From the NCBI GenBank assembly GCA_004764695.1, contig SMSO01000014.1, positions 4,412,845 to 4,476,844 of the forward strand: DNA of 64,000 bases, given 5' to 3'. Both the position numbers and the translations under genes were made by a program. Within the stretch, counting starts at the first letter, position 1. Each line of letters begins with the position of its first letter. Below the pieces are notes generated by a model. That model was given only the letters and a program-made list of their open reading frames with translations. It had not been told where the DNA came from and ran no database searches. The stretch comes from Schizochytrium sp. TIO01. Its lineage: Eukaryota; Protista; Bigyra: Labyrinthulomycetes. Shown here in pieces: positions 1 through 60,067 of this stretch.

Positions 1-2
1 AT

Positions 3-4700: not shown

Positions 4701-7104
4701 TAGGCTTTGCCTCCGGTGCAGGTTGCGAATTGTTGAGATCCAAACCTTGAAAGATACCATCCTCAAGCTGTTCGCCCATGTTTTCTGACCAAGATGACGA
4801 AAGGGCTGATACTGCTCGCGTACGACTCCCAGACGCATGAGAGGACCCTGGTCCTTTGACTAATCCAACACCCTCTAAAAGACCGGTTAGAGAAGAATTG
4901 TCATCTCCTGCCAGACTAGAAATCTGTGAGAATGATCGGTTCCGAGGCACTGACGCCGGTCCTGTAATGCGTACTTCATCGTATGAAGACGCCGTGCGTG
5001 CAGCACTTGACTTGGGCTTAGCAGCGGATGAATGGTCAACATTCGCCTCTGTACTAGACGAAGTCTCTTCTGAAATCGGGTCGAGGCGAGTAGGGCAATC
5101 TCCACCATCATGGTTGCTATCTCTATCGATATCTTTGATCGGCGATGAACAAGGTCCAGGGGAATCTTTCGTGGCTGCGTCTATTCTGCTTTGAGACTGC
5201 AGTCCAGAGGCCGATCCTACAGATTGCGGGGCTGACAATGGCGTGTTATTACTTGGTTCCTCCTCACCGTCGTTTCTGCCATGGTCATTTGCGGTCTTGG
5301 CGCTTCGAAGCCGCCTCCGGATAGTGTCCGGTGGGCTATCAAGCCGAATCTTTTTCCCTGGAGAATTCGAGGGTGGGGCTGTGCTTGTGCTTTTGAAGGG
5401 TAAAGTTCCAATGGATTGAGGCTCGTTCAAATCTGCTTTGTCAACATCTTGCTTAGAAGCGTGATCAACATTATTTTTCTCTTCGACAATTTCTTTTTGA
5501 GAAGGTTTTGGTGTCTGATCATTATCCTTTTTGTTAGGCAATGTCTTCTGCTGGCCGTCTAGATGTTCCTCATCAATGTCCATCTTGTTGCTCTGGTCTA
5601 AAGAATGGCTGGCCAAATCTGAATGAATATTACCATGAACAGATCGTTGTGGTCTCTGGGAAGGCATTTCATCTATTAAGGTAGTTGTCTTTTCATAGTC
5701 CTTTGTGCCTTGATTCGTGCGTGGTGAAGCATGAATCTTCTGTGGTGAAACCTGCTGGTCATTGCTATCAGAAGACTTGACATCCTCTAAGCTGGTTTTG
5801 TCTTGAGATAATTGCATTTGGGAAGTAGACAGGCTCTGCTCTGGAGATTTGAAGCGGGGCGATCGCCTTTTCACTTTGGCAGGATTTGAGTGAGCCCTGC
5901 CTTGACGTGATGGCGTCTCGAGATTTCGGTGATCTTTGTGCTCTGCATCATCCTGATAGCCATCTGAATTCCAATTATCTTCTTGATCATTCTGGTGGTC
6001 ATCTGAATCTCTGCTGTCTTCTTGTTGGTCCTCATCAGCACTCATTTGTTGAGCATCATTAGCATCATGAACAACATATTGATTATGAGCGGCCTGCTCC
6101 TCCCTTTCTGTTTCATCAGGTAGATGTAGTAATGGTTGGCCAAGAGATGAAGACGACGATGATCTCGAGGGCTGGCTCCAGGTAGTCCTGTTAAATGATT
6201 GAGGGGCCTGATCTCCACGCGAATTTGCAGACCCTCTGAAGGAGACTCGTTCTCTTCTCTGAGATGTTGGGGTTGAGGTACGTGCAAGTTCATACTGACT
6301 TATCTTTGATAACTTTTGATATTGTAACTTCTTGGAGTAGTCTAATTGTGGGTCTCTTGGCCAATAACTGTCCTTGGAACTAAGATCTTTCACAGCATCT
6401 AAATTACTCCTCTTTTGATACTCCAAACTGGACGTTTTCACTTTAGCGTGGTGCGGTTTAGGAAGTTGATCAGGAACTACCAGTGTCCATTTATTTCCCT
6501 GCGAGTCTGTAAAGATATCGTCTTCGACTGACGTATGTACTCCAACTAGATACCTTGTATCCATCTGGATTTTCTTGCCGCCTTTGCGCCTGAATAGATC
6601 TACTTCAAAATGTCCTCTCCAAATCCTCGGTCTAGAACGTTTGTTGATTTCATCTTCCTGAATGCCGAGATAGAAGCACCACCGATTTCTCAAGAACGGT
6701 ATCATTTCTTGATACGGTGTTGTCGGTTTCGCAACAGGTCGTGGTAAGCTTACATTCCCCGCTAAAACGTGATCAATAGGGCAGTAATACCTGCTCGCTT
6801 CGCACGATTTCCACCCGCACATACAGTTAACAACATCACTAGAGCCGCAGATCATCGCTGAAGGTCCAAAGCCGCCAAGGTCTAGTACAGCATCAGATTT
6901 CTTAGGCGCTGGTTTCGCATGTGACCTGTTCCTTTTCGGGGCTGTGTCTAGAGGGGCGTTTGTGAGAGTTGATTTCTTTCTCCTCTTTTGAGCATGCGAG
7001 GGCAACGTTGACAACTCCAACACCGCCGCGGTTGAAGGTGTATCGCTGGCTTGGACCACCGCGGCATTGCATGCCAGGGCAGTCAGGTCTTCATCGTCCT
7101 CCAT
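1708..7104 (-). CDS. Large low-complexity Q/S/P-rich protein (1798 aa) with a Cys/His-containing (possibly THAP-like) N-terminal domain and a C-terminal coiled coil
   Basis: Uninterrupted 5.4-kb ATG ORF. N-terminus has CMCGWKSC...LP...RNRW...RIWRGHF; C-terminus is heptad-rich (LASLEARVQLLIKK...LEAELEAFK). Confidence 0.75.
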   Translation of the reverse strand: MEDDEDLTALACNAAVVQASDTPSTAAVLELSTLPSHAQKRRKKSTLTNAPLDTAPKRNRSHAKPAPKKSDAVLDLGGFGPSAMICGSSDVVNCMCGWKSCEASRYYCPIDHVLAGNVSLPRPVAKPTTPYQEMIPFLRNRWCFYLGIQEDEINKRSRPRIWRGHFEVDLFRRKGGKKIQMDTRYLVGVHTSVEDDIFTDSQGNKWTLVVPDQLPKPHHAKVKTSSLEYQKRSNLDAVKDLSSKDSYWPRDPQLDYSKKLQYQKLSKISQYELARTSTPTSQRRERVSFRGSANSRGDQAPQSFNRTTWSQPSRSSSSSSLGQPLLHLPDETEREEQAAHNQYVVHDANDAQQMSADEDQQEDSRDSDDHQNDQEDNWNSDGYQDDAEHKDHRNLETPSRQGRAHSNPAKVKRRSPRFKSPEQSLSTSQMQLSQDKTSLEDVKSSDSNDQQVSPQKIHASPRTNQGTKDYEKTTTLIDEMPSQRPQRSVHGNIHSDLASHSLDQSNKMDIDEEHLDGQQKTLPNKKDNDQTPKPSQKEIVEEKNNVDHASKQDVDKADLNEPQSIGTLPFKSTSTAPPSNSPGKKIRLDSPPDTIRRRLRSAKTANDHGRNDGEEEPSNNTPLSAPQSVGSASGLQSQSRIDAATKDSPGPCSSPIKDIDRDSNHDGGDCPTRLDPISEETSSSTEANVDHSSAAKPKSSAARTASSYDEVRITGPASVPRNRSFSQISSLAGDDNSSLTGLLEGVGLVKGPGSSHASGSRTRAVSALSSSWSENMGEQLEDGIFQGLDLNNSQPAPEAKPTATVCTASPSPVSGTHGASGSQNLGPAESVGGFGQSSLATENVESILIELLHMSNQLPIGGAVCLTLMNPNHFETLRQIISCPISPEEMKEGIKYLITLPQVRARGFTVSQNDNNGGVFTSMPLFVVAVAKTLATLTSDWQEDTKVCDSVLEEFLILYSRLCQEAQNAAMNRLFRQQDSSTPGLSTGTLIQQYQQQQHHHPQQYQQQYQQQYQQQYQQQYQQQYQQHYQQLYQQHYQQLYQQQYQQHAHSSREGLPHAQNISAQIEAGAMTTNRNAIKQILARANMTVASSADEGLSDYYAQMNSPLPRQTPGHNYQSPTLNNCINYNEYMQQFGSYYGSSDISQMMSMDALQQNLQPGFGSHNLGPNDQIPYSTNSFSPSNIPAPVQGLSDSRIASVPTTNRVASSTVPEDGSTKITSYFTSRATSTAHEGSVSNTPAAISMSPSITGTTPVEQTLEKPGDLSDIPMPPEAVPGDDDYMYAGGAFDSDSSDEEENAEMQEPKQQTSQQESRQRPSQSSQPQQTQQKSSEKQSVQQQPPQQTQQKASEKQSLQQRSPQHKSQKASEKQSPQQQRPQQTQQNASEKQPLPQQPPQHKSQKASKEQLPHQQPPQQTQQKASEKQPLPQQPPQHKSQKSSKKQLPHQQPPQQTQQKASEKQPLPQQPPQHKSQKSSKKQLPQQQPPQKQASKKQLPQHQVLQQQAQHHPSQEEHGQQHKLQRDEHEQEQPPQQYPTQEHQLDLDQSPQRQPIQQHPTQTRPLEQEHHQLPQQQVSKRQSSQLHAPQRQPLQPQQPIKISRKEPARQKQVSHSRPAYDTQDPIVPAPFAHLYESSVQQAPPVVPPGNMQAHQTPPRTSHHFLSQYDIPQHVAQVMMRNKAVKDAEDMKETLASLEARVQLLIKKNTKLKMEKARYKKRLTDANAELRLNQSKFSAELGVARASAARAKVKRDAARNSLKEVVQVVDGLYAKNREEKKRRRALEAELEAFKAEHDNKRAKLT
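2640..3140 (-). repeat. Coding minisatellite with ~60-bp units (QQPPQQTQQKASEKQPLP-type 20-aa repeat)
   Basis: About 8 consecutive 60-nt lines are near-identical, alternating two variants (QTQQK / HKSQK). Confidence 0.85.
3962..4133 (-). repeat. Coding 12-bp repeat encoding (QQQY)n
   Basis: Tandem TGCTGGTATTGC-type units on the + strand; the protein reads QQYQQQYQQQY... Confidence 0.85.
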
Positions 7105-15495: not shown

Positions 15496-18400
15496 TTGAC
15501 TGAGATCTTCAACCCGCTAGCGACGGTTGTACACGCTATGGCAAGCTCGAGATACCTATCTAAGCGCGATGCGCAGCGGAAAGAGCTTGGCAAGTCTCTC
15601 GTGAGTTCGATCGCTGGCATTTCTGAGGAAGATGACCCTGAGAATGCTGCTCTTGCATTGGATTTCGTTCTCGACCACTTCGCTCGGCCCCAAACCTCAC
15701 AACTCTTAATGCGCGTCAAAGATGTCTACACATTATATGAAGGCATTGCAAGCAAAATGCACGCTCACGCAGAACACTTGCGGGCTGAACGCATGATGGA
15801 CTGTCTTCACGAAGCTCAAGAAGGCTTAGACGAGGACACATTTGCAGCTGTTGCGAGTATGCTTCATATGCTTTCCCATGCCCCTTCAAGGACAGACCTT
15901 GATGAGGATGCCAAATTGCTCTACGACATGCGCGTCGAAGAGCGCCGAAACCAGGAAGATGCTGCAAGGCTTGAGACAGATGCGCGCGAGCGCCTTCGTC
16001 TTCATAAAGAAGCACTTCTACAAGAATTGCAGCAAGTCCCTGATGATCTCATTGATCAAGATTGGCTCGATGAGGATTTCTCTTCATCCTCAGAACTTTC
16101 AGATTTTGGCTCAGATGATGAAGAAGACACAAAGTCCCCACCTAATCAGATTTCCATCACCGATGCTGCAAAGAGTGTGGAGAAACCAGATGCATTGAAG
16201 ATTCAAACCCAAACAAGTAAGGATACTGAAGACGAGGATTGTCTTCTGGATGACATTTGGCTCTCGAGTGTCCGTCGCTCTGCACAAGATGAGGAACTGA
16301 TTTCTACTGTTGTCATGGAAGATCAAAAGCCACCGACAATTCAACATTTTAATGCTACGTGCTATGACGCATGTGTTCGTTCTTTGAAAGAGCGAGAATC
16401 GCTGCGTGGTTTAGGGGCCGAGTCACTTGTACCTGGTGGAAGAGACCATATCGTTCATGAAGCCGAGCTCTGCAGAGCAATGCTCTTGGCTTTTCATGGG
16501 TACGAGTCTGTTGGCTTGGTTGTGAAGAGACTATCCTCAAAGGGGGGAATAAAGTCACCGCTGTCTACCTGCGACAGGAATTTTAACTTTCAAAGCTTTC
16601 AATTAGAGCAGGGGGTATCTCTTGCTCATACCTCTGGAGAGGCTTTGGCAAATGCAATTAGGCCGCTTTTAAAAGCAGCAAGCGCCTTGCATGAAGCCCG
16701 CATGATATGTTTAAATTTGCTTGATTCCCAAGCTACCCTTCCGCTAACGTTTCAGCGGACAGCAGCGCTGATCTCAGACATTATCGAAACGCATGTGAAG
16801 TGCCAAATTACTGCAATGGAAAAACAGGTGCAACAGGGAGCAATTATTAGTGAAACAACTACTTATTCTGCTACAGAGCGAATCAAAACTGCACCGACAT
16901 TAATATCTCTATCTAATGACCTCCGCTCATTACGTGAGGAGGCAAAAGCTTTGAAAGATGCCGCAAGTCTTCTTTCTAATTTTCGACCCACTGGAGATGT
17001 TGACGACTGCCGCACCGCAGCGAAAGATCTGCTTAATGCTCTTTTTGACCGAGCGCTGGATGAATTTACTTTGCAAGGGAACCATGTATCATCAGTTCAA
17101 CCCTACGATATATGGGGACGTATTTTCCGGGCTGCCATGGCATCGCAGACACAAATGTTAGGGCAATTTTTTTATGAAGGCCGACTTTCTGACCCTTTTC
17201 GGGAATTTTTCCTAAGTGTAGATATTCAAGGTGGTGTGATTCTCCATGCTGCTCCCCGCGCGTGGCAGCCAATGTGCGAGCGAATTTTCATGTTGTGTGA
17301 CGCTATTGAAATGCTACGAAGGCTTGGTGCTCATGATGGACCTCGTGGTGCAGGATGGCCACCTTGGCCTCTTGAGGTAGGCCAGCGAGCCCTTAACTTG
17401 CATCGTGTTCTTCTCGCCGAAACCCCTCCAGCTCGTGTTCAGGCACCTGGGACAACAGACGATGAGTCGCACATGGCCGTGGCTCTACTTGGTACCCGTC
17501 TGTTTGCGCCCCTGAATGACATCTGCACACTGGTTAACCAGACTGTGATGCGTGAGCACATTGTATCACATCGGGTTCTAGAGAAGCTTGCCGAGATGCG
17601 AGCACTGTTTTTTGTCCAAAATGAACTCTCACTGCAGGCATTTTTACGAGATGTTTATTATGCTGCAGATCGTGATTTACCGTCTTCTAACCCAGTGGTA
17701 GCTGAAGCCATGAATATTTATCTTGAAGAGTTCATGGAGGATACAAGGCTACCCCCAGGCTGCTTGACTCCAGCAGCATCCCCTACCTCGAAGTACGGAA
17801 TGGATGACGAGCAACGTAGTGAGACGTTAACCCATCTTCTTCATGCTGATCTGGAGGATCACTTGCAAGACCTGTCAAAAGATCAAGTTCACGTAGTTTT
17901 TGAAAGCGTCCCTGGATCAGAGCGTTTCCAAAATTTTGGCGTACGTGCGTTAACAGGCATGCGACTCGTATGTGACATTCCACCACCTTTGGATTCTGTT
18001 GTTGATGGTGATGCACATGCGCAATATCAAGCTGTTTTCCGATTCCTGGTTCTGATTAAACGTACTATGCTGGTGCTTTGTCGACTTCAGCACAACCTTC
18101 GTCGTGATGTCCTGACAGCTCAGAAGGAGGGGGACACAACCCGACCTTACGCACGCATGCATAAGGTCAATTTAATGCTTATCGAACACTTACATTTTAT
18201 TTCTAATCTCCATGCATTTGTCATGCATCGGCTTGCTGATGTTTCGTGGACCCAGTTCACTGACGAAGCTCGCAAGGCAACTCGTATTGACCTTGTGTAC
18301 GATCTTCATCGCGCCTATCTTCGTCGTGTGTGCATTCAGTGCTTAATTTCACCTGACACGCCGAATGCTCCAACTCGTGTCATGGAGGCTGTTCATGAAA

Positions 18401-18666
18401 TGCTCGAGTGCTCTCTACATTTCCGCGTCCTGGTGATTGCACTCTGGCAAAATTCACAGCGAAATGAAGAGCAGACCGTTGAACGACTATGGAAATCATT
18501 GAGCGCAATACACGCCAAATTCACCCGTGCTAGTCGCTTCCTTCTCATTATGCTTTCCCAGCGCGCTTCCCTCGGTGGAGCAAAGCACCTTGAGGACGTT
18601 CTCACCCGTCTCGATTTCAACCAAGCATGTCGCAGAAAACGCGTGCCTGCAAAATCCACCAAGTAA
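15496..18666 (+). CDS. Gamma-tubulin complex component (Spc97/Spc98/GCP family, GCP5-like)
   Basis: GRIP-domain motifs: GRLSDPFREFF, PPPLDSVV...YQAVFRFLVLIKR, HFISNLHAFVM, and the C-terminal LEDVLTRLDFN. First ATG at 15538. Confidence 0.85.
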   Translation: MTEIFNPLATVVHAMASSRYLSKRDAQRKELGKSLVSSIAGISEEDDPENAALALDFVLDHFARPQTSQLLMRVKDVYTLYEGIASKMHAHAEHLRAERMMDCLHEAQEGLDEDTFAAVASMLHMLSHAPSRTDLDEDAKLLYDMRVEERRNQEDAARLETDARERLRLHKEALLQELQQVPDDLIDQDWLDEDFSSSSELSDFGSDDEEDTKSPPNQISITDAAKSVEKPDALKIQTQTSKDTEDEDCLLDDIWLSSVRRSAQDEELISTVVMEDQKPPTIQHFNATCYDACVRSLKERESLRGLGAESLVPGGRDHIVHEAELCRAMLLAFHGYESVGLVVKRLSSKGGIKSPLSTCDRNFNFQSFQLEQGVSLAHTSGEALANAIRPLLKAASALHEARMICLNLLDSQATLPLTFQRTAALISDIIETHVKCQITAMEKQVQQGAIISETTTYSATERIKTAPTLISLSNDLRSLREEAKALKDAASLLSNFRPTGDVDDCRTAAKDLLNALFDRALDEFTLQGNHVSSVQPYDIWGRIFRAAMASQTQMLGQFFYEGRLSDPFREFFLSVDIQGGVILHAAPRAWQPMCERIFMLCDAIEMLRRLGAHDGPRGAGWPPWPLEVGQRALNLHRVLLAETPPARVQAPGTTDDESHMAVALLGTRLFAPLNDICTLVNQTVMREHIVSHRVLEKLAEMRALFFVQNELSLQAFLRDVYYAADRDLPSSNPVVAEAMNIYLEEFMEDTRLPPGCLTPAASPTSKYGMDDEQRSETLTHLLHADLEDHLQDLSKDQVHVVFESVPGSERFQNFGVRALTGMRLVCDIPPPLDSVVDGDAHAQYQAVFRFLVLIKRTMLVLCRLQHNLRRDVLTAQKEGDTTRPYARMHKVNLMLIEHLHFISNLHAFVMHRLADVSWTQFTDEARKATRIDLVYDLHRAYLRRVCIQCLISPDTPNAPTRVMEAVHEMLECSLHFRVLVIALWQNSQRNEEQTVERLWKSLSAIHAKFTRASRFLLIMLSQRASLGGAKHLEDVLTRLDFNQACRRKRVPAKSTK

Positions 18667-19212: not shown

Positions 19213-20316
19213 ATGGCATCCCGTAGTCATGCTGAGGGCCAGGCTCTTGCACGTGCAAAGACGAAGACTTTGGTAAGTGGCAAATTTTAAATTACATGTC
19301 TGAGGACATTGGCCAAATATAAATAAACAAGCGCTATATGGGAAATTAATTTCTGACAATTGTAATTACGGTTGTTCTCGTTTTGTCTACAGGCTGGTCA
19401 TGAGCAACGTGTGCTCTCTCTTGGATGGAACACTAATGGATCCCTTCTCGCATCTGGATCAGATGATACAAGTGTAAAATTGTGGTCAGTGGGGAGCACA
19501 GGAGTAACCCGCGAGGTACGGGATCTGAAAGGTCACACTAAGAGCGTGGACCAAGTTCGCTGGGCAAAACACGACCCGCACAAGCTGGTGTCCGCGTCTG
19601 CGGATAAGAGCGTACGTCTGTGGGATACGCGGGCTGGACGTTGCGCACAAACCTGGCTTACATCTGGACCAAACTTAAATCTTGCATTTCATCCCGATGA
19701 AACTCAAATCGCCGTAGGCGACCGTGATGATCTTGTGACTTTGTTTGATGTTCGGAAGCAGGATGCTTTAGATTCGGTTGACTTTCAGACGCGTTTTGAC
19801 ACCCAAATTAATCAGATATCATGGAATACAAGTGGTTCGCACTTGTTTTTGACCTGGGGCAAGAGCGCGGTTGGTCGTGGTGGCCTGAAGATTGCGAACA
19901 CGCAAGAAGGCAAAATAGATATTGTTGCAACCCTTGAAGCGCACACAGCCAACTGCATTTCCTTGGACTTTAGTGGTGACGGAAAGTGGTTTTCCGTAGG
20001 CAGCACTGATGCGCTACTTTCTGTATGGGATGCGGAGGAACTTTGTGCTGTACGCACTTTTGGCAGAAGCGAAACACAGTTGCGGAGCTCAAGCCTCAGT
20101 GCTAACGCCCAACTGATTGCATATGGCTCTCTAGATCGCACCATCGCTGTGGATGACGTGCAAACTGGGGCAGAAGTAGCTAGTATTGACTCTAGCATGG
20201 TTGACGGTGTCAACTCCTTGGCATGGCATCCATCCGAGCTCATTTTAGCTTTCTGTGGTGATGAACCAAAGGGCACACGCGGTGGTTTTGTTCGCGTAGT
20301 AGGCGTAAACTTCTAG
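19213..20316 (+). CDS. THOC3: THO complex subunit 3 (Tex1-like WD40 protein), 2 exons: 19213-19272, 19393-20316
   Basis: WD40 repeats with THOC3-typical GH..SVDQ..W, AHTANCI..F...G..F.VGS.DAL.S.WD and LAWHP...LAF. A GTAAGT...CTACAG intron joins MASRSHAEGQALARAKTKTL in frame to AGHEQRV. Confidence 0.8.
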
Positions 20317-45676: not shown

Positions 45677-47554
45677 TCATGATGGTGAATTGCGAAGTTT
45701 CTGGCGGCACTGGTGTAGGCAGGCACTTGTTTCCGCAATATCTGGGTGATGGATTTCCAGTGTCTCGATTTGTAGATTTGATGCCTGCTGGAAATAATCA
45801 ATAGCTTCAGACCAGAAGCCCTGATCACTATATACCAAACCAATATTATGAAGAGTTTTTGCTACAAGAGGATGGTGCGGGCCGTATGCTTGCTTGAAAA
45901 TATCCATGGCATTTTTGAAGTAGGTTATTGCGTCTTCGTAAGAGCCTTCCTTACGAAGCACATTTCCAATATTGTTGAATGCAAGAGCAACATCAGGGTG
46001 GTCGGGGCCATAGGAGGCTTCTGTGATGGTCTTGGCTTCCTCAAAGAGTTTGCGAGCATCTTCATAACGGTCTTGTGCTTGATAAATAAAAGCAATATTA
46101 TTGAGCGTTTCTGCAATGCTGACATCGTCTTCGTTTAAAACCTCTTGACGAATGACAAGTGCCTCTGAGAAGTTCTGTAAAGCTTCTTCATAATCTTGGC
46201 GAGCGGAGAGGAGATGCCCAATGTTATTTAAAGTCGAAGCTACCTTAGCATCTTTCGGACCCAAGGTGTCCCGAACAATTCCCAGAGCTTCCTCATAGTG
46301 TGCTAGTGCCTCATCAAGCTCACCAAGAGACTCATAGGCACCACCTATATTATTTAGTGTGTTGGCAATATATTCATGTTCTGGTCCTACACTGTCTTGA
46401 AGGAGCTTAAGGGCCTCGTCGTATAGCTGCAGTGCGTCATGGTAATAGCCTTGTCTTTGACGAAGGTAGCCTGTTTGTGAAAATACTTGAGCTACATAAA
46501 CTTCGTCAGAGCCATCCTTTTGCGCTTTAGAAATTGCATCACGACCCACTTGCACGAACCAGCTACAGACTTGATCGGTGATGATCTCGTTAAGAACATT
46601 AAATCCTCCACCTATGGATCGCTCAATTGCAAAGTCAATCATCTCTTTATCATCAGGTTTCCTGCATTGAGCTTTACGCATGTCTGGGTAATTTGTGCAA
46701 ACCTTGTAAACCACCTCTGCATCATCAAGCAGCTGTTTTAGGTATTTTTCTTCCTGGCCCGGGGCTAGAAGCGCTTGCATAGGTTGGGTGCTTGTTGTGG
46801 CTCCATAGATCTCCCAAACACACCAAGCCCTTCCGAGTGGGGCAGGTGCATCCCACTGGTTAATCAATATCAATGAACCATCAAATCGAGCTATGGCTTC
46901 ACGTAAACCCTCGGTCAGGATTTCTTCCCGCAAGCCCTGAATATCAGGCCTAGGCCTTTCTGAGCTTGTTAAAAGAACCTGATTTGAGCAAAAAACGTCA
47001 AGCCAGATAAACTGGGCTTCGAGATGCAGGGCTCTCTCCTCGGCGTAGTCTACTAAAGCTTGGACAAGGTCAGCAAATCGGCACTCATGAGCATGGCTAA
47101 GATAGAGGCCCTCATAAGCTTCGCCAATGTCGTCGTGCGGGATAAGCTTTGTATAGAACTGCTCTCCTTGCTCAAGCCCTGTAGTCGCTGGCAGCACAAT
47201 AAATTGTGTGATGTCCTCTGTTGTCCAGTCTTCACGAGGCTTCTCTTGAGCATCTTCACATGTAAAAATCACCACATCTCCGGTATAGGCAACACGTCCT
47301 TCAAACCTATCGTCAAACTCCTTGACAAGTTTGATCGTTCTGCCTTGTTTCACAGAGGCATCAATGTCTCTTGTAGCCACAAAGAGTCGCACGCCTGGTG
47401 CTAGAAGGTCCTCCTGCACCTCCACGAGAAATCTGCGTAGAAAACTCACGCTTACGCCTTCGTATCGTACCAGAGACCTCTCCACATCTTCAACACTTGG
47501 CGCAATCTTTGACGCACTAAAAAAGCTCCCGCTCTTGCGTCTTGCCACCTGCAT
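45677..47554 (-). CDS. HET-like (TIR-related) domain plus kinesin-light-chain-type TPR repeat protein
   Basis: LSH.H...F...FIWLDVFCSNQ and PLGRAWCVWEI motifs, followed by about 6 42-aa TPRs (e.g. GPDHPDVALAFNNIG...YEDA). Confidence 0.8.
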   Translation of the reverse strand: MQVARRKSGSFFSASKIAPSVEDVERSLVRYEGVSVSFLRRFLVEVQEDLLAPGVRLFVATRDIDASVKQGRTIKLVKEFDDRFEGRVAYTGDVVIFTCEDAQEKPREDWTTEDITQFIVLPATTGLEQGEQFYTKLIPHDDIGEAYEGLYLSHAHECRFADLVQALVDYAEERALHLEAQFIWLDVFCSNQVLLTSSERPRPDIQGLREEILTEGLREAIARFDGSLILINQWDAPAPLGRAWCVWEIYGATTSTQPMQALLAPGQEEKYLKQLLDDAEVVYKVCTNYPDMRKAQCRKPDDKEMIDFAIERSIGGGFNVLNEIITDQVCSWFVQVGRDAISKAQKDGSDEVYVAQVFSQTGYLRQRQGYYHDALQLYDEALKLLQDSVGPEHEYIANTLNNIGGAYESLGELDEALAHYEEALGIVRDTLGPKDAKVASTLNNIGHLLSARQDYEEALQNFSEALVIRQEVLNEDDVSIAETLNNIAFIYQAQDRYEDARKLFEEAKTITEASYGPDHPDVALAFNNIGNVLRKEGSYEDAITYFKNAMDIFKQAYGPHHPLVAKTLHNIGLVYSDQGFWSEAIDYFQQASNLQIETLEIHHPDIAETSACLHQCRQKLRNSPS

Positions 47555-49049: not shown

Positions 49050-50110
49050 GTCTTGAATGTTTTCATCTCAGTACGAACACAGACGCTCCGCACATATCTC
49101 ACGAACTTGCTCAAACGAACCAGGGGAAGATGGATCTTAACCACGTTTTCGTTTGCAGGTGTTTACAGGAACGTAGCAATCATTCTTTGAGTTATATATC
49201 TAAGCACAAAAGAGGTTTCCACATTCCACCGCACAGCATCCTTCAAATCGATTGAGACAATTATCGCTGGTAAAACAACATGCATTTAGAATCCCCTCTT
49301 GGGCATGCATCAAATTCCGCTGCGCGTCACGAACCAGTCCATCTGCTTTTCAAACTTCTTTCATTCGCCGTCGGAATTTTTGTTCGGCCGAATAGCTGTT
49401 CTAATTTCTAATTTTATCTTCGCATTTAACAAAAGATAATTCAGATTGTTCGGGACAAGGCAAATAGTCTCTCAACCCGTGATTCCTTCATCGCACCCAC
49501 GCTCCACACGCACACCATTGTTTCATCGCAGGTTACAAAGATGGAAGACTATCGTTGCGCAGCAGCTTCTACGGATTCAATAATACAGTCTCGGCATGAA
49601 AGCTGTCCCTTCTCACAGCTTGTGCCTTTAGAAATCGTCATCTTCTTCTTATACACAAGGCATTTCTCTTCAGGATTAACAGCAGCTCCAAAAGATTCGC
49701 GCTGAATTGCTCACGAGCACTCAGACGCTGACCAGGGTTTTGAGCTTTCAACGTTTTGATGAGTTTCTGGATTGAACCGTTTGGCGCAGAGTACAGGTCC
49801 TCTACGACCACACCTACGGAGTACATATCCATTGCAGTTTCGAACTTTGTCACACGGCGATCCCGCAAGTCGGGAGCAATGTACCGAGGTGTTGCCCGTA
49901 ATCTGCGACTTTAATACCATCGAACTTTTTTACCAAGCAAGGCTGTCCAATTACTTGTAAGGAATATGTTCTCGGGCTGGATATTACATTGCACAATGCT
50001 GTGCAAGGTAGAATTGCGATACTAACAAGTAAGCCATGTTGAGTCTATTGCCAGATATTTTGCTTTCGTTGATTTGTGAATCCACTTTGCCAAGTCGCCT
50101 TGCTCGTCTG
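49050..50110 (-). pseudogene. Decayed paralogous copy of the kinase-RING/Rcat 3' part of the neighbouring gene
   Basis: 49560-49900 aligns by eye with 51067-51400 (RV.KFETAMDMYSVGVV.EDLY..PN.SIQKLIKTLKAQNP.QRLSARE). 50082-50107 matches 51610-51635, and 49080-49260 retains RFEGCCAVECGN and SFEQVRE. Frameshifts, stops and deletions occur throughout. Confidence 0.85.
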
Positions 50111-50422
50111 GAGATTTCATATTCAAAAATCCCGCAGTTCTATGATTCCATATCAACAATATACTACTGGAGCCAAAATCAAGTTTATCAGGTGGCAAGG
50201 TATGCTACCTTCGTCTCTCTAAAAGATATTTGCATTAAAGTTTACCAATATTACAGGGAGATTTTAAAAGGGTCCTACGTAGGGACTTCTTAGCTGAGGT
50301 AACTTTAACAACAGCACAATAGATTTGCACCAAAACCACACTTATGGCAAAAAGTTAGTCCATCAGATCTTAAAAATCAAGCTTGAAGCAATTTTTAAAA
50401 ATTAAATTAAAATTTGATAAAC

Positions 50423-53400
50423 TTATTTCAATCGACTTAACCTAAACCTAGTGCCTACCACTCCAGATTTTAGCAGTGGTTTGAGCTGCTCTCGCAGAGT
50501 ATTTGGAAGACCTCTGTCCTTAACATTCTCATTCCAGTACTTAACAAGACGATCTGCGCGCAGCTCATCCCACGCCTCTCGAACCTGCTCGAATGAGTCA
50601 GGGAAATACGGATCTTTACAACGTCGTTTTGAGCAAGTTCTCACATGTTCATGACAAGCTTCACCGTTTTGTGAACTAAACGATAGACACCAAGCACAAA
50701 AGTGATGTCCACATTCGCGATTTCCACATTTCACAGCACAACAATCATCAAATCGATCAATGCAAAAATGACAGCTCGGGCAGAACACATTAAAGATTTT
50801 CTCCTGTATGTGCTGTAGATGACGCTGTACATCGCGACTCTGTCCATCCATCTGTACAAGATCTGCCACGCGCCTTTGAATTTCTTGTTCAGTTCTAATT
50901 GCTGCTTCACTTTCTGCTTTCCTCTTCGCAATCACCAAGAGATGATTCAGCGCCTTAGGCGCAAGCCGAATGATCGCTTGACCCGTGATTCTTCCAGCAC
51001 ACTCATGCTCCATGCATTTCATCGTTCCATCACCGCCAACAAATACGGAAGTCTGTGGTTGCGTGGCAGCTTCTACGGATTTTGCAATACAGCATCGGCA
51101 CAGAAAGTGTCCCTTCTCACAGCTTGTGCCCTCAGAAGCCAGAATCTCCTCCATACACACATGGCATTTCTCTTCAGGATCAACAGCAGCTCCGAATGCT
51201 TCGTGACAAAGTGCTTCACGAGCACTCAGACGCTGAGCAGGATTTTGCGCTTTCAACGTTTTGATGAGTTTCTGAATTGAACTGTTTGGCACAGGATACA
51301 GGTCCTCTAAGACCACACCCACGGAGTACATGTCCATTGCAGTTTCGAACTTTGACACACGGCCGTCCCGCAACTCGGGAGCAATGTACCGAGGCGTTGC
51401 CTGAAATGAGGTGTACGTTGCAGTGCAATTTGCTATCTTGATGCCATCGAAATCCCCAAGCAAGGGTGTCCCATTGCTTGTAAGAAATATGTTCTCGGGT
51501 TTGATATCACAGTGCACGATGCCGTGCAAATGTAGAGCTGCCATGCCATAAAGAAGGCCCATGGCGAGTCGATCGCGAGATGCTTTGCCTTCATTAGGAT
51601 GTTCCTGGATCCACTTTGCCAAGTCGCCATGCTCGTAATAAGGCATGACGATACAACCCCATGGCATTCCATGCATAGTGTCTACAAAAGCACCAGTAAT
51701 TCGAATCACGTTCTGTGACACCACGTTTCCCATTTTAGCGACTTGTTTGTAGAACGCCTTGGAATTACTTGCATGTCCGAGTTGAAACTGTTTCAAAACC
51801 AAAGTTCTGCCGTCGTTATCAAGAACTCGTTGTACTTTTTTGCCGCCTCTCGAGGCCAGCGGCTCGCCAACAGACTTGAAGTCCATAATTTTGATATTCG
51901 GCAGCCACAGATCAGCACAGGCCACTTCAAGAACACCTGCTGCACTCACATGTATACTTTTAAGCCAGTTTTGATCTTGCAATAGCTCTGGATAATGTTC
52001 TTTTGCGAGATGCAGTGTTTCAGCAAGCTTATGACGAAAGGCTTTACTCAGCTCGATAGGGGTGCCTTGAGAGAGGATGGATTCCATTTTCTTGACTCGA
52101 CCTCTGTAATGCTTCCTATCTTTCTCCTCTAAACCTTCTGACTCAAGCTCTTCCTTAGCTCTTTTCAAACTCCCCATTGCATTACTGGAACGAGTCAGTT
52201 TATCGTATAAATCTCGAAGTGATTGGACGTTGGGCGTATTTGAGCCCAAACGTAGATATTCGTCCAATTCTTGAATGTCTTTTGACACAAGTACTGCGTT
52301 TAACATGATATTTTCAGAGTAGCGTTCGAAACGGTTGAATGCCGAGCTCATTGTGCGAAGTATTTCTGATACTTGACCACTGAAAGTGTCTTTCTGAAGG
52401 ACTTCAAACTCTTCAAGGAGAGCATTTTTAAGCTCTAAGAGTTCTGGTTCTAGCTTCACAGCCTTTTCAGGTGCCCCGAGGGCAAGTGAAAATGTATCCC
52501 CAAGCTGTAATTCATTCATTCTATAGACAATTCTTTCAGCAGCTTCTTGGCGTCGCTGTCCAATGTTGTTTGGCCAGGTATCCGGGTTTAGGTTGTACTC
52601 ATCAATGCATTTGTTGACTCGAACAACGAGCTCTTCACAGTATCTGACATCATCTGCGCGTGGCTCATCTTCAATGACTGGTGTGACGTTTATGTCCAGA
52701 TATTCTAATAATCTTGCAAGTTTAGATTTGAATTTGTCTACTGTATCCCCATCAAATTCGTGGTTGTTAGCGCGAACGTCTTGCACAAGCGATTGTAGAT
52801 GACTCCTTTCAGCATTCCGCTGCTTAATGAGATCAGGCAAGCCATCCGAAGAGCTTCCGCGAATCTGGTCCTGAAGGGCGTCTATTCGTTGTTTGGAGTT
52901 CTGGATGCCACTGGAAGCTATCCGCAATTTCATGTGGCCAAAGTATCCCTGGATCGCTGGCCCTTTGAACTCCTCAAGTAACGTAATGCCGATCTGAAGG
53001 GAGTCTCCTCTGGCTCCGCCTCGGTTCACACGCAAGTTGTAGATTGCTTGCGCAAGTTGCACCACATCGGCGAAACTCACGCTATCCGATTGTGTTCTGA
53101 AGCAGAAACGTGAATGAGTGAGTGAGCGAAGATAGCATCACCAGCATTATCAGCACCATTAGTACGAGATAAACAAGTTAGTTGAACAATTCTTGCAAGA
53201 AAGAGTCCCCCAGCTCTTGAAAGAACATTGACCACCAAAACAAAACATATATGCCTGAAACTTACGGAGACCCATCTAAATCGTGTGCTATCGCAACAAA
53301 TTCAACGCCATCATCAGCAACGACGGTATTGTTGTCATTGACACTATCGACGTTTTCCTGCTCATTGCTGCGCTCTGCAGAACCCCCGCTTACCACATTT

Positions 53401-56400
53401 ATTGAGTCGCAGGATTTGGTATCTGAGGCATTGATGTCCTCTCCAGGGAAACATACCTTAGCGAACAGCTCTTCAGGAGTCAAACTAACAGAACTATTAA
53501 AACTGTGACACGTGGAAAATTAGAAAAGCAAACAAAGCCCTCGTTAGATCAACGATGATTGTGTGCGATGAAGCTGCCATGAAACTGCATGGAAACTCAG
53601 AAAGCTACGAATGTAAGCCCTTGCGCTAGTTGGTTGAAGCAATGGAGCAAACAGAACTTACTAGATTTGAACAAAAGGGCAGGTCTTGTGCAGAGACTTT
53701 GCGACAGCCTTAGCTCCATTATCGCTAATCTTGTCCCCACGAAGACTGTGAGTAGTAATAAGTAATAAGATCATTCGTAGTGATTACGATGCAACGTCAG
53801 TCAAATGGTTAGCCATCGAGCACTCTCTCTTTCTCAGACTGAAAATCGCAGAATTGCAGGAGACTTCCTGCTTCTGTGTTCCTTCGCTAATCGAATCCAG
53901 AGCCTAACATCCATTCTCTCATTGCAATACGATGTGCTTGAGTTCGCTTTCAGTTCTGCTTTACCCTGTTCAAGTGCTACAATTCGACTTTAGTAAACGA
54001 AGGGCTTGGCGAAAGTTATCAACAATGGTTTCTCTAATTCTCTGCTTCATCGAACAAGAAACAGCCTGAAAACCCTTTCTTGTGGATTTTTAAAACGTAC
54101 TCTAAATATATCAGGTTCTTGCATTCCGCAATTCCCTTTGCGATGGCCTTTCCACCCTCATCGCCAAACTTGCTCTCACTAAGACTGCGAATAATAATAA
54201 GAAATAAGATCATTCGTAGTGATTACGATGCAACGTCAGTCAATTAGTCAGCCATCGAGCACTCTCTCTTTCTCAGACTGAAAATCGCAGAATTGCAGGA
54301 GACTTCCTGCTTCTGTGTTCCTTCGCTAATCGAATCCAGAGCCTAACATCCATTCTCTCATTGCATTGCGACGTGCTTGAGTTCGTTTTCAGTTCTGCTT
54401 TATTCTGTTCAAGTGCTACAATTCGACTTTAGTAAACGAAGGGCTTGGCGAAAGGTAACAACGATGGTTTCTCTAATTCTCTGCTTCATCATACAAGAAA
54501 CAGCCTGAAAACCCTTTCTTGTGGATTTTTAAAACGTACTCTAAACGTGTCAGGTTCTTGCATTCCGCAATTCCCTTTGCGATGGCCTTTCCACCCTCAT
54601 CGCCAAACTTGTTCCCACCAAGACTGCGAATAATAATAAGTAATAAGATCATTCGTAGTGATTACGATGCAACGTCAGTCAATTAGTCAGCCATCGAGCA
54701 CTCTCTCTTTCTCAGACTGAAAATCGCAGAATTGCAGGAGACTTCCTGCTTCTGTGTTCCTTCGCTAATCGAATCCAGAGCCTAACATCCATTCTCTCAT
54801 TGCAATACGATGTGCTTGAGTTCGCTTTCAGTTCTGCTTTACCCTGTTCAAGTGCTACAATTCGACTTTAGTAAACGAAGGGCTTGGCGAAAGTTATCAA
54901 CAATGGTTTCTCTAATTCTCTGCTTCATCGAACAAGAAACAGCCTGAGAACCCTTTCTTGTGGATTTTTAAAACGTACGTTAAACGAGTCAGGTTCTTGC
55001 ATTCCGCAATTCCCTTTGCGATGGCCTTTCCACCCTCATCGCCAAACTTGCTCTCACTAAGACTGCGAATAATAATAAGAAATAAGATCATTCGTAGTGA
55101 TTACGATGCAACGTCAGTCAATTAGTCAGCCATCGAGCACTCTCTCTTTCTCAAACTGAAAATCGCAGAATTGCAGCAGACTTCCTGCTTCTGTGTTCCT
55201 TCGCTAATCGAATCCAGAGCCTAACATCCATTCTCTCATTGCATTGCGACGTGCTTGAGTTCGTTTTCAGTTCTGCTTTATCCTGTTCAAGTGCTACAAT
55301 TCGACTCTAGTAAACGAGGAGGGCTTGGCGAAAGGTAACAACGATGGTTTCTCTAATTCTCTGCTTCATCGAACAAGAAACAGCCTGAAAACCCTTTCTT
55401 GTGGATTTTTAAAACGTACTCTAAATATGTCAGGTTCTTGCATTCCGCAATTCCCTTTGCGATGGCCTTTGTGCCCTCATCGCCAAAGTTGTTCCAACTA
55501 AGACTGCGAATAATAATAAGTAATCAGATCATTCGTAGTGATTACGATGCAACGTCAGTCACTTAGTCAGCCATCGAGCACTCTCTCTTTCTCAAACGGA
55601 AAATCGCAGAATTGCAGAAGACTTCCTGCTTCTGTGTTCCTTCGCTAATCGAATCCAGAGCCTAACATCCATTCTCTCATTGCATTGCGACGTGCTTGAG
55701 TTCGTGTTCAGTTCTGCTTTATTCTGTTCAAGTGCTACAATTCGACTCTAGTAAACGAAGGGCTTGGCAAAAGGTATCAACAATGGTTTCTCTAATTCTC
55801 TGCTTCATCGAACAAGAAACAGCCTGAAAACCCTTTCTTGTGGATTTTTAAAACGTACGTTAAATGTGTCAGGTTCTTGCATTCCGCAATTCCCTTTGCG
55901 ATGGCCTTTCCATCCTCATCGCCAAAGTTGTTCTCACTAAGACTGCGAATAATAATAAGTAATAAGATCATTCGATGCAACGTCAGTCAAATAGTTAGCC
56001 ATTAAGCACTCTCTCTTTCTCAGACTGAAAATCGCAGAATTGCAGGAGACTTCCTGCTTCCGTGTTCCCACGCTAAACGAATCCAGAGCCTAACATCCAT
56101 TCTCTCATTGCAATGCGACGTGCTTGAGTTCGTTTTCAGTTCTGCTTTATCCTGTTCAAGTGCTACAATTCGACTCTAGTAAACGAAGGGCTTGGCGAAA
56201 GGTAACAACGATGGTTTCTCTAATTCTCTGCTTCATCGAACAAGAAACAGCCTGAAAACCCTTTCTTGTGGATTTTTAAAACGTACTCTAAATGTGTCAG
56301 GTTCTTGCATTCCGCAATTCCCTTTGCGATGGCCTTTCCACCCTCATCGCCAAAGTTGTTCTCACTAAGACTGCGAATAATAATAAGTAATAAGATCATT

Positions 56401-59400
56401 CGATGCAACGTCAGTCAAATAGTTAGCCATTAAGCACTCTCTCTTTCTCAGACTGAAAATCGCAGAATTGCAGGAGACTTCCTGCTTCTGTGTTCCTTCG
56501 CTAATCGAATCCAGAGCCTAACATCCATTCTCTCATTGCATTGCGACGTGCTTGAGTTCGTTTTCAGTTCTGCTTTATCCTGTTCAAGTGCTACAATTCG
56601 ACTTTAGTAAACGAAGGGCTTGGCGAAAGGTAACAACGATGGTTTCTCTTATTCTCTGCTTCATCGAACAAGAAACAGCCTAAAAACCCTTTCTTGTGGA
56701 TTTTTAAAACGTACGTTAAACGAGTCAGGTTCTTGCATTCCGCAATTCCCTTTGCGATGGCCTTTCCACCCTCATCGCCAAACTTGTCACGAGTAAGACT
56801 GCGAATAATAATAAGAAATAAGATCATTCGTAGTGATTACGATGCAACGTCAGTCAATTAGTTAGCCATCGAGCACTCTCTCTTTCTCAGACTGAAAATC
56901 GCAGAATTGCAGGAGACTTCCTGCTTCCGTGTTCCCTCGCTAATCGAATCCAGAGCCTAACATCCATTCTCTCATTGCATTGCGACGTGCTTGAGTTCGT
57001 GTTCAGTTCTGCTTTATCCTGTTCAAGTGCTACAATTCGACTCTAGTAAACGAAGGGCTTGACGAAAGGTAACAACGATGGTTTCTCTAATTTTCTGCTT
57101 TATCATACAAGAAACAGCCTGAAAACCCTTTCTTGTGGATTTTTAAAACGTACCCTAAAAATGTCAGGTTTTTGCATTCCGCAATTCCCTTTGCGATGGC
57201 CTTTCCCCCCTCATCCCCAAAGATGTTCCCACCAAGACTGCGAATAATAATAAGAAATAAGATCATTCGTAGTGATTACGATGCAACGTCAGTCACTTAG
57301 TCAGCCATCGAGCACTCTCTCTTTCTCAAACTGAAAATCGCAGAATTGCAGGAGACTTCCTGCTTCTGTGTTCCTTCGCTAATCGAATCCAGAGCCTAAC
57401 ATCCATTCTCTCATTGCATTGCGACGTGCTTGAGTTCGTGTTCTGCTTTATTCTGTTCAAGTGCTACAATTCGACTCTAGTAAACGAAGGGCTTGGCGAA
57501 AGGTAACAACGATGGTTTCTCTAATTCTCTGCTTCATCGAACAAGAAACAGCCTGAAAACCCTTTCTTGTGGATTTTTAAAACGTACTATAAAAATGTCA
57601 GGTTTTTGCATTCCGCAATTCCCTTTGCGATGGCCTTTCCCCCCTCATCCCCAAAGATGTTCCCACCAAGACTGCGAATAATAATAAGAAATAAGATCAT
57701 TCGTAGTGATTACGATGCAACGTCAGTCAATTAGTTAGCCATCGAGCACTCTCTCTTTCTCAAACTGAAAATCGCAGAATTGCAGGAGACTTCCTGCTTC
57801 TGTGTTCCTTCGCTAATCGAATCCAGAGCCTAACATCCATTCTCTCATTGCATTGCGACGTGCTTGAGTTCGTTTTCAGTCCTGCTTTATTCTGTTCAAG
57901 TGCTACAATTCGACTCTAGTAAACGAAGGGCTTGGCAAAAGGTATCAACAATGGTTTCTCTAATTCTCTGCTTCATCGAACAAGAAACAGCCTGAAAACC
58001 CTTTCTTGTGGATTTTTAAAACGTACGTTAAATGTGTCATGTTCTTGCATTCCGCAATTCCCTTTGCGATGGCCTTTCCACCCTCATCGCCAAACTTGTT
58101 CCAACCAAGACTGCGAATAATAGTAAGTAATAAGATCATTCGTAGTGATTACGATGCAACGTCAGTCAATTAGTCAGCCATCGAGCACTCTCTCTTTCTC
58201 AAACTGAAAATCGCAGGATTGCAGGAGACTTCCTGCTTCTGTGTTCCTTCGCTAATCGAATCCAGAGCCTAACATCCATTCTCTCATTGCATTGCGACTT
58301 GTTTGCTTTCATTTTTAGTTTTGCTTTATTCTGTTCAAATTCTACAATTTGAACATAGTTACAGGAGGGCTTTGCAAAAGGTATCAACAATGGTTTCTCT
58401 AGTTTTTTGCTTCACGGAACAAGAACCAACTGGAAAACCCTTATTTGTGGGTCAAAATAACGTACGTTAAACGTGTCAGGTTCTTGCATTCCGCAATTCC
58501 CTTTGCGATGGCCTTTCCACCCTCATCGCCAAACTTGTTCCCACCAAGACTGCGAATAATAATAAGTAATAAGATCATTCGTAGTGATTACGATGCAACG
58601 TCAGTCAATTAGTCAGCCATCGAGCACTCTCTCTTTCTCAAACTGAAAATCGCAGGATTGCAGAAGACTTCCTGCTTCTATGTTCCCTCGCTAATCGAAT
58701 CCAGAGCCTAACAACCATTCTCTCATTGCAATGCGATGTGCTTGAGTTCGTGTTCAGTTCTGCTTTATCCTGTTCAAGTGCTACAATTCGACTCTAGTAA
58801 GAGGAGGGCTTGGCGAAAGGTATCAACAATGGTTTCTCTTATTCTCTGCTTCATCATACAAGAAACAGCCTGAAAACCCTTTCTTGTGGATTTTTAAAAC
58901 GTACTCTAAATGTGTCAGGTTCTTGCATTCCGCAATTCCCTTTGCGATGGCCTTTCCACCCTCATCGCCAAACTTGTTCCCACCAAGACTGCGAATAATA
59001 ATAAGTAATAAGATCATTCGTAGTGATTACGATGCAACGTCAGTCAATTAGTCAGCCATCGAGCACTCTCTCTTTCTCAAACTGAAAATCGCAGGATTGC
59101 AGAAGACTTCCTGCTTCTATGTTCCCTCGCTAATCGAATCCAGAGCCTAACATCCATTCTCTCATTGCCATTACGACTTGCTAGCGTTCGCTTTCAGTTC
59201 TGCTTTATCCTGTTCAAGTGTTACAATTCGACTTTAGTAAACGAAGGGCTTGGCAAAAGGTATCAACAATGGTTTCTCTTATTCTCTGCTTCATCGAACA
59301 AGAAACAGCCTGAAAACCCTTTCTTGTGGATTTTTAAAACGTACTCTAAATGTGTCATGTTCTTGCATTCCGCAATTCCCTTTGCGATGGCCTTTCCACC

Positions 59401-60067
59401 CTCATCGCCAAACTTGTTCCAACTAAGACTGCGAATAATAATAAGAAATAAGATCATTCGTAGTGATTACGATGCAACGTCAGTCAATTAGTCAGCCATC
59501 GAGCACTCTCTCTTTCTCAAACTGAAAATCGCAGAATTGCAGGAGACTTCCTGCTTCTGTGTTCCTTCGCTAAACGAATCCAGAGCCTAACATCCATTCT
59601 CTCATGCCCTTACGACGTGCTAGCGTTCGTTTTCAGTTCTGCTTTATCCTGTTCAAGCGCTACAATTCGACTTTAGTAAACGAAGGGCTTGGCGAAAGGT
59701 ATCAACGATGGTTTCTCTAATTCTCTGTTTCATCGAACAAGAAACAGCTTGAAAACCTTTTATTGTGGATTTTAAAAACGTACGTTAAGTTTGTCAGGTT
59801 CTCGCATTTTTTCAGGGACTTTGCAATTGCCTTTGCGGTATTTGGACCGATGCGCTGGTTGCTAAGACTGTGTTTGTTGAGTTTTCAAGTATATATCATT
59901 TCCAACTTCATCAGTACCGATCCAAAACTCTTCTACTACAAGGCTTGCATTCTTGAACACATTAATAACGCCAATGCCTCCTGCTGTCTCCTCTTTTTGC
60001 CACCGCGCACTTACTCAATCTCCGTCGTATCTTTACTGATGTCCTTAACCTTGCGTGCTACACTCAT
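50423..60067 (-). CDS. 18-exon cytosolic LRR-array / helical / Ser-Thr kinase / RING-Rcat (RBR-like) protein, ~1407 aa
   Basis: Exons: 60015-60067 (MSVARKVKDISKDTTEI); 84-nt LRR exons 59784-59867, 59345-59428, 58905-58988, 58466-58549, 58027-58110, 57588-57671, 57154-57237, 56715-56798, 56287-56370, 55859-55942, 55420-55503, 54979-55062, 54540-54623, 54101-54184, 53662-53745; 53266-53502; 50423-53096. All introns are GT..AG and phase 2, and the total is 4224 nt in frame. Kinase motifs LVLK, HCDIKPEN, LGDFDG, YIAPE, DMYSVG; RING CxxC...CxxGH.LCxxC...CxxxxC; Rcat-like CPSC...DCCAVKC....CGHHFCAWC. Confidence 0.85.
53746..59783 (-). repeat. Tandem exon+intron array, ~439-bp unit (range 428-441), 13 homogenised LRR exons and 14 near-identical introns
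   Basis: Recurring exon starts on + strand at 54101, 54540, 54979, 55420, 55859, 56287, 56715, 57154, 57588, 58027, 58466, 58905, 59345. Confidence 0.97.

Follow-up and report, generated by a model that had tools for sequence, protein, structure and literature searches.

What is to be made of a protein kinase open reading frame (ORF) that lies beside what looks like a 439-bp satellite? The locus that raises the question occupies positions 50,423 to 60,067 of a 64,000-nucleotide stretch of contig SMSO01000014.1 in assembly GCA_004764695.1 of Schizochytrium sp. TIO01, a thraustochytrid (Labyrinthulomycetes, stramenopiles) (this whole stretch is called the window, and coordinates are window positions unless a contig is named). 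The original prediction, made from the letters alone, was that splicing joins pieces of the repeat to the kinase ORF, and the answer can now be given as confirmed: the apparent satellite is part of a real spliced gene of 18 exons. We consider it probable, with some reserve, that this one expressed gene makes a cytosolic protein of about 1407 aa in which a hypervariable domain of 15 leucine-rich repeats (LRRs) binds a variable ligand, followed by a region of about 400 aa, a non-RD kinase of Ser/Thr type and a ubiquitin ligase (E3) module of RING-between-RING (RBR) type that has no in-between-RING (IBR) domain.

Tandem Repeats Finder reports a single array at 53721-59808 with a period of 439, 13.9 copies and 93% matches. 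Every unit carries on its minus strand one 84-nt open segment between a polypyrimidine-tract acceptor ending in cag and a gtacgt donor, and a scan for AG, 84 nt and GT gives 15 exons, each of exactly 84 nt and in open frame, between 59867 and 53662. The full model runs on the minus strand from 60067 to 50423: a start exon of 53 nt is followed by the 15 LRR exons, then by a linker exon of 237 nt and lastly by an exon of 2674 nt. Exon arithmetic sums the 18 exons to 4224 nt with phase 2 at every intron, no internal stop and canonical GT..AG borders; the frame was verified via phase arithmetic and the split codons (D, T, Y, G or P), the exons being searched singly, and the nearest in-frame stop is 29 codons upstream of the ATG at 60067. 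The splice-site scan and the arithmetic thus bear out the single-frame model of 18 exons and 4224 nt that had been proposed. Its parts are as follows.

60015..60067, minus strand: start exon of 17 codons and 2 further nt that opens with the ATG at 60067, donor GA/gtaagt; hydrophilic, without a signal peptide
59784..59867, minus strand: LRR exon 1, 84 nt in phase 2, which encodes a divergent N-terminal repeat
54101..59428, minus strand: LRR exons 2-14, thirteen 84-nt phase-2 exons
59428, 58988, 58549, 58110, 57671, 57237, 56798, 56370, 55942, 55503, 55062, 54623 and 54184, minus strand: starts of LRR exons 2-14
After each of LRR exons 2-14, minus strand: introns of about 355 nt, donor gtacgt, acceptor tcgcag
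53662..53745, minus strand: LRR exon 15, which encodes the repeat that caps the array at its C-terminal end; arrays of paralogs terminate in the same motif
53266..53502, minus strand: linker exon, 237 nt, acidic, with no match in Pfam
51884..53096, minus strand: first part of the last exon, about 400 aa, conserved among paralogs
51194..51883, minus strand: protein kinase domain, from the Pkinase match and the alignment
50999..51166, minus strand: predicted RBR-type RING1, C639-x2-C-x11-C-x3-H-x2-C-x2-C-x24-C-x4-C694
50783..50998, minus strand: Cys-free linker of 72 aa, modelled as two long helices, in the place of an IBR
50633..50782, minus strand: Rcat (RING2)-like domain, C767-P-x-C-x9-C780-x4-C-x4-C-x4-C-x2-C ... 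H810, H812, C816
50423..50632, minus strand: C-terminal helical tail of the module, and the stop codon; distant relatives have the tail conserved along with the module

Evidence that the exons are joined in RNA comes from contigs of sequencing runs placed on the 6-kb stretch 52600-58599, outside which lie the start exon and LRR exon 2. Three runs from three studies, X1, X5 and X8, are RNA-like, their status as RNA being a guess, and run X15 is taken as DNA because its contig total equals the genome total. In contigs of the RNA-like runs there are four joints with GT..AG on the minus strand, at 53096/53266, 53502/53662 (found in X1, X5 and X8), 53745/54101 (in X1) and 54184/54540 (in X5), while on the same 6 kb no joint at all is present in the DNA-like run, whose contigs continue through these introns. 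The RNA-like contigs jointly cover the order LRR13, LRR14, LRR15, linker, last exon, with the linker exon unbroken and joined to both its neighbours, and one X1 contig of 3025 nt by itself runs from LRR14 through LRR15 and the linker into nearly the whole last exon, ending near the stop codon. LRR array and kinase exon are thus in one transcript, as had been predicted, and the possibility of separate or unexpressed genes has given way to one expressed unit.

In X1 and X5 only consecutive joints are present. At 58110 contigs of both have a loose end, which opens with the 3' end of LRR exon 1 and passes from there into the start of an LRR exon; its 42 aligned bases have one mismatch to exon 5, at the one place where exon 5 differs from exon 2, and it is most simply the LRR1 to LRR2 joint. 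Exon skipping from LRR exon 1 to the exon at 58110 was considered and dropped, given that single mismatch. Run X8, which is labelled as another organism, has in addition the joints 53745/56287 and 54623/56287, each with only 26 nt on one side. Across 52600-53750 some 19 positions of the linker and of the last exon's first part are not the same in it as in the window, and a different repeat precedes its capping LRR, which suggests that the array differs between strains (X8 on one side, X1, X5 and X15 on the other).

As to what the array encodes, single LRR exons match Pfam LRR_6, the ribonuclease inhibitor (RNI) type, with E values from 5.7e-5 to 0.07, and because the match covers profile positions 10-24, the beta strand is interrupted by the exon border. 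The repeats are of 28 aa, LxxLxLxxNxIGdeGaxxLaxaLxxn, and the RNI-type call that had been made by eye is upheld both by these matches of single exons and by that of a paralog transcript described below. No transmembrane segment or signal peptide was found by hydropathy scan, as had been foreseen: the top 19-residue hydropathy is 1.32 and the N-terminus is hydrophilic, and so the protein is likely to be cytosolic.

The solenoid combines an invariant scaffold with hypervariable residues on the beta strands, that is on the concave face. Over 136 core exons from paralogs, entropy comes to 3.3-3.5 bits for repeat positions 2 and 3; for the split codon it is 2.9, for position 26 it is 2.5, for positions 5, 8 and 25 about 1.4 and for position 4 it is 0.64, and at most other positions it is below 0.4. 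Except for position 8, the high-entropy sites are exactly the x positions of LxxLxLxxN, which in LRR proteins are solvent-exposed residues of the concave face. The present gene's own array shows the same pattern at the nucleotide level, with a diversity that reaches 0.5-0.64 at the exon ends and is 0 throughout the core, the introns having 0.056. The variable codons are about five times as diverse as the introns. A crude pooled count of nonsynonymous (pN) and synonymous (pS) diversity in that array gives pN 0.317 and pS 0.124 at x positions, a pN/pS of 2.55, with 0.23 for the framework, and the family-wide figures, at saturation, are 1.25 and 0.18; the partition was chosen after the variation had been seen and the exon pairs are not independent, and so these ratios are indicative only. 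The contrast with the introns is independent of the choice of site classes. Variation is concentrated at the predicted ligand-contact positions.

Instead of a single-copy housekeeping gene, a search of the genome (64 Mb in 37 contigs) found at least 51 fast-evolving genomic copies of the kinase-RBR exon, most of them about 60% identical to that of the present gene, together with further, more divergent copies; several paralogs have stop codons inside the match. Where the upstream 9 kb were inspected, in 20 paralogs, all 20 have arrays in which LRR exons of 84 nt and phase 2 follow one another every 420-450 bp or so, the arrays ranging from 3 to 19 or more exons and almost all of them ending in the same capping repeat. 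The family thus combines fixed symmetric exons, variable exon number and variation of the binding face, the marks of families that shuffle one LRR per exon. The present gene is a divergent member: none of its paralogs is close, 62% identity being the highest, it has an LRR consensus of its own, and its array has been homogenised within the gene, because its introns match no other locus. It is also contig-internal, 4.46 Mb into a contig of 7.46 Mb, and about 21 of the 51 copies are less than 100 kb from a contig end, against about 12% expected. Two pairs of paralogs with equal scores have identical terminal LRR exons, one being G000:C32:2889857-2892520 and C35:2708734-2711397 (G000 denotes the genome searched) and the other C30:1672198 and C34:2829326. 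The C32/C35 pair is less than 10 kb from contig ends, and some pairs at different ends are near-identical, which points to recent segmental duplication between chromosome ends.

The architecture does not hang on the present gene. An MMETSP0960 transcript (P0028/P0175), 100% identical to the paralogous exon G000:C13:1153892-1156630, has a complete ORF of 1240 aa with LRR_6 (match at 1.4e-33), Pkinase and the C-terminal module, and its LRRs are in separate exons of about 84 nt (100% identical blocks of 27-28 aa) with short introns; it is independent proof of the combination of LRR, kinase and module. Beyond the genome searched the kinase-plus-module proteins of Hondaea fermentalgiana have N-termini with LRR_6 and Ank or with Ank, and there is one kinase-plus-module protein in a dinoflagellate; the module is also found behind SF1 helicases, DEAD helicases, WD40 and ubiquitin domains. 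That the architecture may be undescribed, as the original prediction suggested, stands in so far as literature searches found no paper on this LRR-kinase-RBR family; it does not stand for the sequences themselves, as family members (the MMETSP transcript and those of Hondaea fermentalgiana) are already in public protein sets, either unnamed or under the label 'protein kinase, putative'.

The 885-aa ORF of the last exon matches Pkinase at 4e-30. Across an alignment of six paralogs and three foreign relatives K430, the H-C-D motif ending in D525, N530 and D543 are invariant, with DFD (D543) replacing DFG; the H-C-D motif makes it a non-RD kinase, HCD reportedly having been put forward as the mark of such kinases by Dardick and Ronald in 2006. 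For the roughly 400 aa that precede the kinase neither Pfam nor the protein atlas gives a family match; this region may be helical and possibly oligomerising. Among solved structures the top match of the kinase is PDB 9gmp_A (3.6e-15, over ORF residues 406-548), an 'uncharacterized Map kinase kinase-like protein' whose overall motif layout is the same. Directly downstream of the gene, at 49638-50200 on the minus strand, is a broken copy of a kinase C-lobe: the ORF at 49638-49868 has 85% identity to residues 570-622 of the 885-aa ORF, and 50022-50198 holds more frame-shifted pieces that resemble its 'GDLAKWI' region. This is a pseudogene fragment from a partial duplication.

Behind the kinase is the module that had been read as RING/Rcat, and profile, structure model and structure search agree in refining this to RBR-type RING1 plus Rcat. 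A profile of the tail, searched against 1.84 billion cluster representatives, matches 1960 proteins when the cutoff is E<=1e-3 and 603 when it is E<=1e-10; in these the module is as a rule C-terminal. An alignment of 50 diverse sequences shows two conserved groups of ligands, a RING1 set and an Rcat set. In the former C639, C642, C654, H658, C661, C664, C689 and C694 are conserved in the C3HC4 cross-brace arrangement of a RING1 (H658 is replaced by Asp in many close paralogs), with the spacing of parkin RING1. The spacing of the latter, C-x2-C-x9-C-x4-C-x4-C-x4-C-x2-C, is that of HHARI RING2. Searched against the PDB, the wide profile finds RNF216 (1.5e-7) as well as parkin (3e-6), its RING1 and its Rcat aligning to the respective counterparts, and the invariant C780 aligns with the Cys of the parkin GGCMHM motif, the catalytic Cys of parkin and HHARI, so that on alignment and model the predicted Rcat has a Cys at the catalytic position. 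With a single sequence or a narrow profile the choice between an ordinary RING (RNF4) and Rcat had been ambiguous, and it was the wide family profile that settled it for Rcat.

The AlphaFold2 model of the module made with the 50-sequence alignment has a mean predicted local distance difference test (pLDDT) score of 93 (an earlier one from 11 close paralogs, with pLDDT 56, was discarded), and the top Foldseek matches of the model are all RBR ligases: RNF216 (4e-5), then HHARI, ARIH2, HOIL-1, parkin and HOIP, with the HHARI catalytic domain and whole RBRs among them. What the module does not have is an IBR (BRcat), residues 695-766 being without any Cys and modelled at high confidence as two long helices. 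From its sequence and predicted fold the module is RBR-type and IBR-less, and it is not filed as a canonical RBR.

How might such a protein work? On the explanation favoured here the LRR face would bind a variable ligand, most plausibly a non-self one, for instance viral or microbial proteins, whereupon the kinase would be set free or brought into clusters. RBR ligases are held in an autoinhibited state, and phosphorylation often activates them, as with PINK1 and parkin. The kinase might, like PINK1 for parkin, activate an autoinhibited RBR module in cis or in trans, and the E3 could then ubiquitinate the bound ligand or a downstream target through C780. The layout of one repeat per symmetric exon lets unequal recombination add, delete and swap repeats in frame, and such frame-neutral exchange accounts for the range in array length across the paralogs, from 3 repeats to 19 or more. 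The gene is a good candidate for a recognition or immune receptor. Carried further, and as a tentative proposal that we hold to be clearly less likely than not, the family could be a self-contained cytosolic system of antiviral or anti-microbial surveillance in which the LRR of each paralog captures a different non-self protein, the kinase switches on the RBR, this tags the captured ligand directly and the repertoire is renewed by exon shuffling. That persistent mirusviruses are hosted by thraustochytrids (PMC12606086), the likely host species of the gene among them, counts in favour of a recognition or immune role.

Several considerations pull the other way. The joints among LRR2-12 and that of the start exon are not directly seen, the former being unresolvable because near-identical repeats collapse in k-mer contigs, and that the spliced runs are RNA is only guessed. 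Nearness of the paralogs to contig ends may reflect assembly breaks at repeats and not telomeres. With Gln446 in the place of the alphaC Glu and an atypical Gly-rich loop, the kinase cannot be counted on to be active; nor, with no IBR, does E3 activity have more than conservation to suggest it. The immune or recognition role and the nature of the ligand are likewise read from sequence, the site classes for the pN/pS ratios were drawn after the fact, and RNI-type LRRs also serve as plain protein-interaction scaffolds.

It is this last point that opens the way to a reading in which the architecture is the same and the signalling endogenous, the LRR being a scaffold or regulator for the kinase and E3 in the manner of LRRK2 and ROCO proteins, with a part in the life cycle, mating or self-recognition and with the family expanded by way of recombination-prone regions. 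RNI-type LRRs are general interaction modules, the kinase-plus-module unit is fused with Ank, WD40 and helicase also, as would fit a general signalling cassette, and the gene is expressed in ordinary culture runs. We nevertheless regard this as unlikely, though deserving of attention: hypervariability is confined to the predicted binding face, where pN exceeds both pS and intron diversity, and a conserved endogenous partner is hard to square with 51 or more copies that differ in repeat number.

The array invites two further explanations. Because all 15 LRR exons are of 84 nt and phase 2, any subset would stay in frame, and a single gene could give many receptor isoforms by skipping them; the X8 joints 53745/56287 and 54623/56287, taken at face value, would skip 5 or 3 exons. 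The 26 nt on one side of each of those joints lie within repeats, however, X8 is differently labelled and has many base differences, so that another array content explains its joints equally well, and X1 and X5 have consecutive joints only, which makes the isoform explanation improbable. More improbable still is a recently amplified repeat under concerted evolution, its copy here decaying or non-functional and the variation at exon ends a by-product of gene-conversion tract boundaries. Units that are 93% identical with their introns included, the kinase pseudogene fragment just downstream and the stop codons within the match in several paralogs are what decay would leave; yet every one of the 18 exons has an open frame and undamaged splice sites, both splicing and expression of the gene are observed, purifying constraint acts on the framework (pN/pS 0.23), and the variable sites coincide with the structural x positions in the present copy and in 20 paralogs alike. 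A receptor-like protein with a variable binding face is the reading that we retain.

Two known systems resemble the family in gene structure. The LRR-ROCO and LRR-kinase candidate pathogen receptors of Ectocarpus are built of 72-nt exons that are shuffled, and positive selection acts on their concave face (Zambounis et al. 2012, PMC3341825; also PMC11378527). Like them the present gene belongs to a stramenopile, has one LRR per exon of fixed length, is predicted to be cytosolic and fuses an LRR sensor to a signalling domain; whereas theirs are 24-aa LRRs of another class with a ROC-COR GTPase or a kinase alone, here the unit is 84 nt and RNI/LRR_6, and the effector a kinase with an RBR-type E3. 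In a Pfam scan no Roc or COR was found in the 885-aa ORF or its relatives, nor in the ORF any NACHT, NB-ARC or P-loop NTPase as in NLR/STAND proteins. The LRR genes of Tetrahymena have exons of 90 bp and introns in phase 2, a uniformity thought unique by the authors, and are over-represented in subtelomeric as well as pericentromeric regions (Xiong et al. 2019, PMC6564038). Shared with these are the exact-length LRR exon arrays, phase-2 introns and a huge fast-evolving family; the differences are that Tetrahymena is a ciliate, that its exons are of 90 bp, that most of its genes are under purifying selection and that no kinase-RBR effector is reported for them. Exact-length phase-2 arrays with one repeat per exon would then have arisen in a third lineage of the stramenopiles, alveolates and Rhizaria (SAR), besides brown algae and ciliates.

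Other likenesses are of domains and logic. Plant LRR receptor kinases (FLS2, EFR, Xa21) and the animal NLR/RIPK/LUBAC pathways also couple an LRR sensor to a non-RD kinase, their ubiquitin ligases act downstream, and their families are large and diversifying. The present protein, with neither signal peptide nor transmembrane helix in the hydropathy scan, is probably no surface receptor, its LRR class is RNI, NACHT and NB-ARC are absent, and its kinase and E3 are in cis and not recruited. With RBR ligases (parkin, HHARI/ARIH1, RNF216, HOIL-1, HOIP) it has in common the RING1 spacing, the Rcat Cys spacing and the Cys at the catalytic position, and it differs in the 72-aa Cys-free two-helix linker in place of IBR/BRcat and in having the module fused to a kinase in one chain. 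What is new is thus the lineage, the 84-nt RNI-type unit and the fused effector of kinase and IBR-less RBR.

The module has a significance of its own, as a widespread and unnamed IBR-less RBR-type module, with about 2000 cluster representatives, that is repeatedly fused to kinases; the recurrent fusion suggests a cis form of the kinase-activates-RBR logic known from PINK1 and parkin. If the proposed role is right, recognition, signalling and execution would be in one chain. To our knowledge almost nothing is known of innate immunity in heterotrophic marine protists, for which the LRR-kinase-RBR family would give a concrete and testable receptor repertoire. Annotation based on ORFs or on satellites misses genes such as this one, and repeat arrays in genomes of this kind are worth checking for hidden exons.

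The surroundings give a measure of how unusual the gene is. The tubulins (G000 loci L033-L035) are in single open frames of 444-472 aa, and in the window a 1056-aa gamma-tubulin complex protein (15496-18666) and a THOC3 homologue (19372-20316) are each encoded by a single ORF, the former with 56% identity to Hondaea fermentalgiana GCP6, its only named relative. With housekeeping genes in single uninterrupted ORFs the genome is intron-poor, and so the 17 introns of the LRR-kinase gene stand out. Three kb from that gene, at 45677-47554 on the minus strand, is a 625-aa ORF with strong TPR_12/TPR_10 repeats (E 4e-76) in its C-terminal half, its first 360 aa being unassigned; tetratricopeptide repeat (TPR) arrays are the other type of candidate receptor in brown algae. 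At the far end of the window, at 1708-7104 on the minus strand, an ORF of 1798 aa without a Pfam match is probably a low-complexity or repetitive protein, and positions 2001-4000 have marked strand skews (GC +0.25, AT -0.32).

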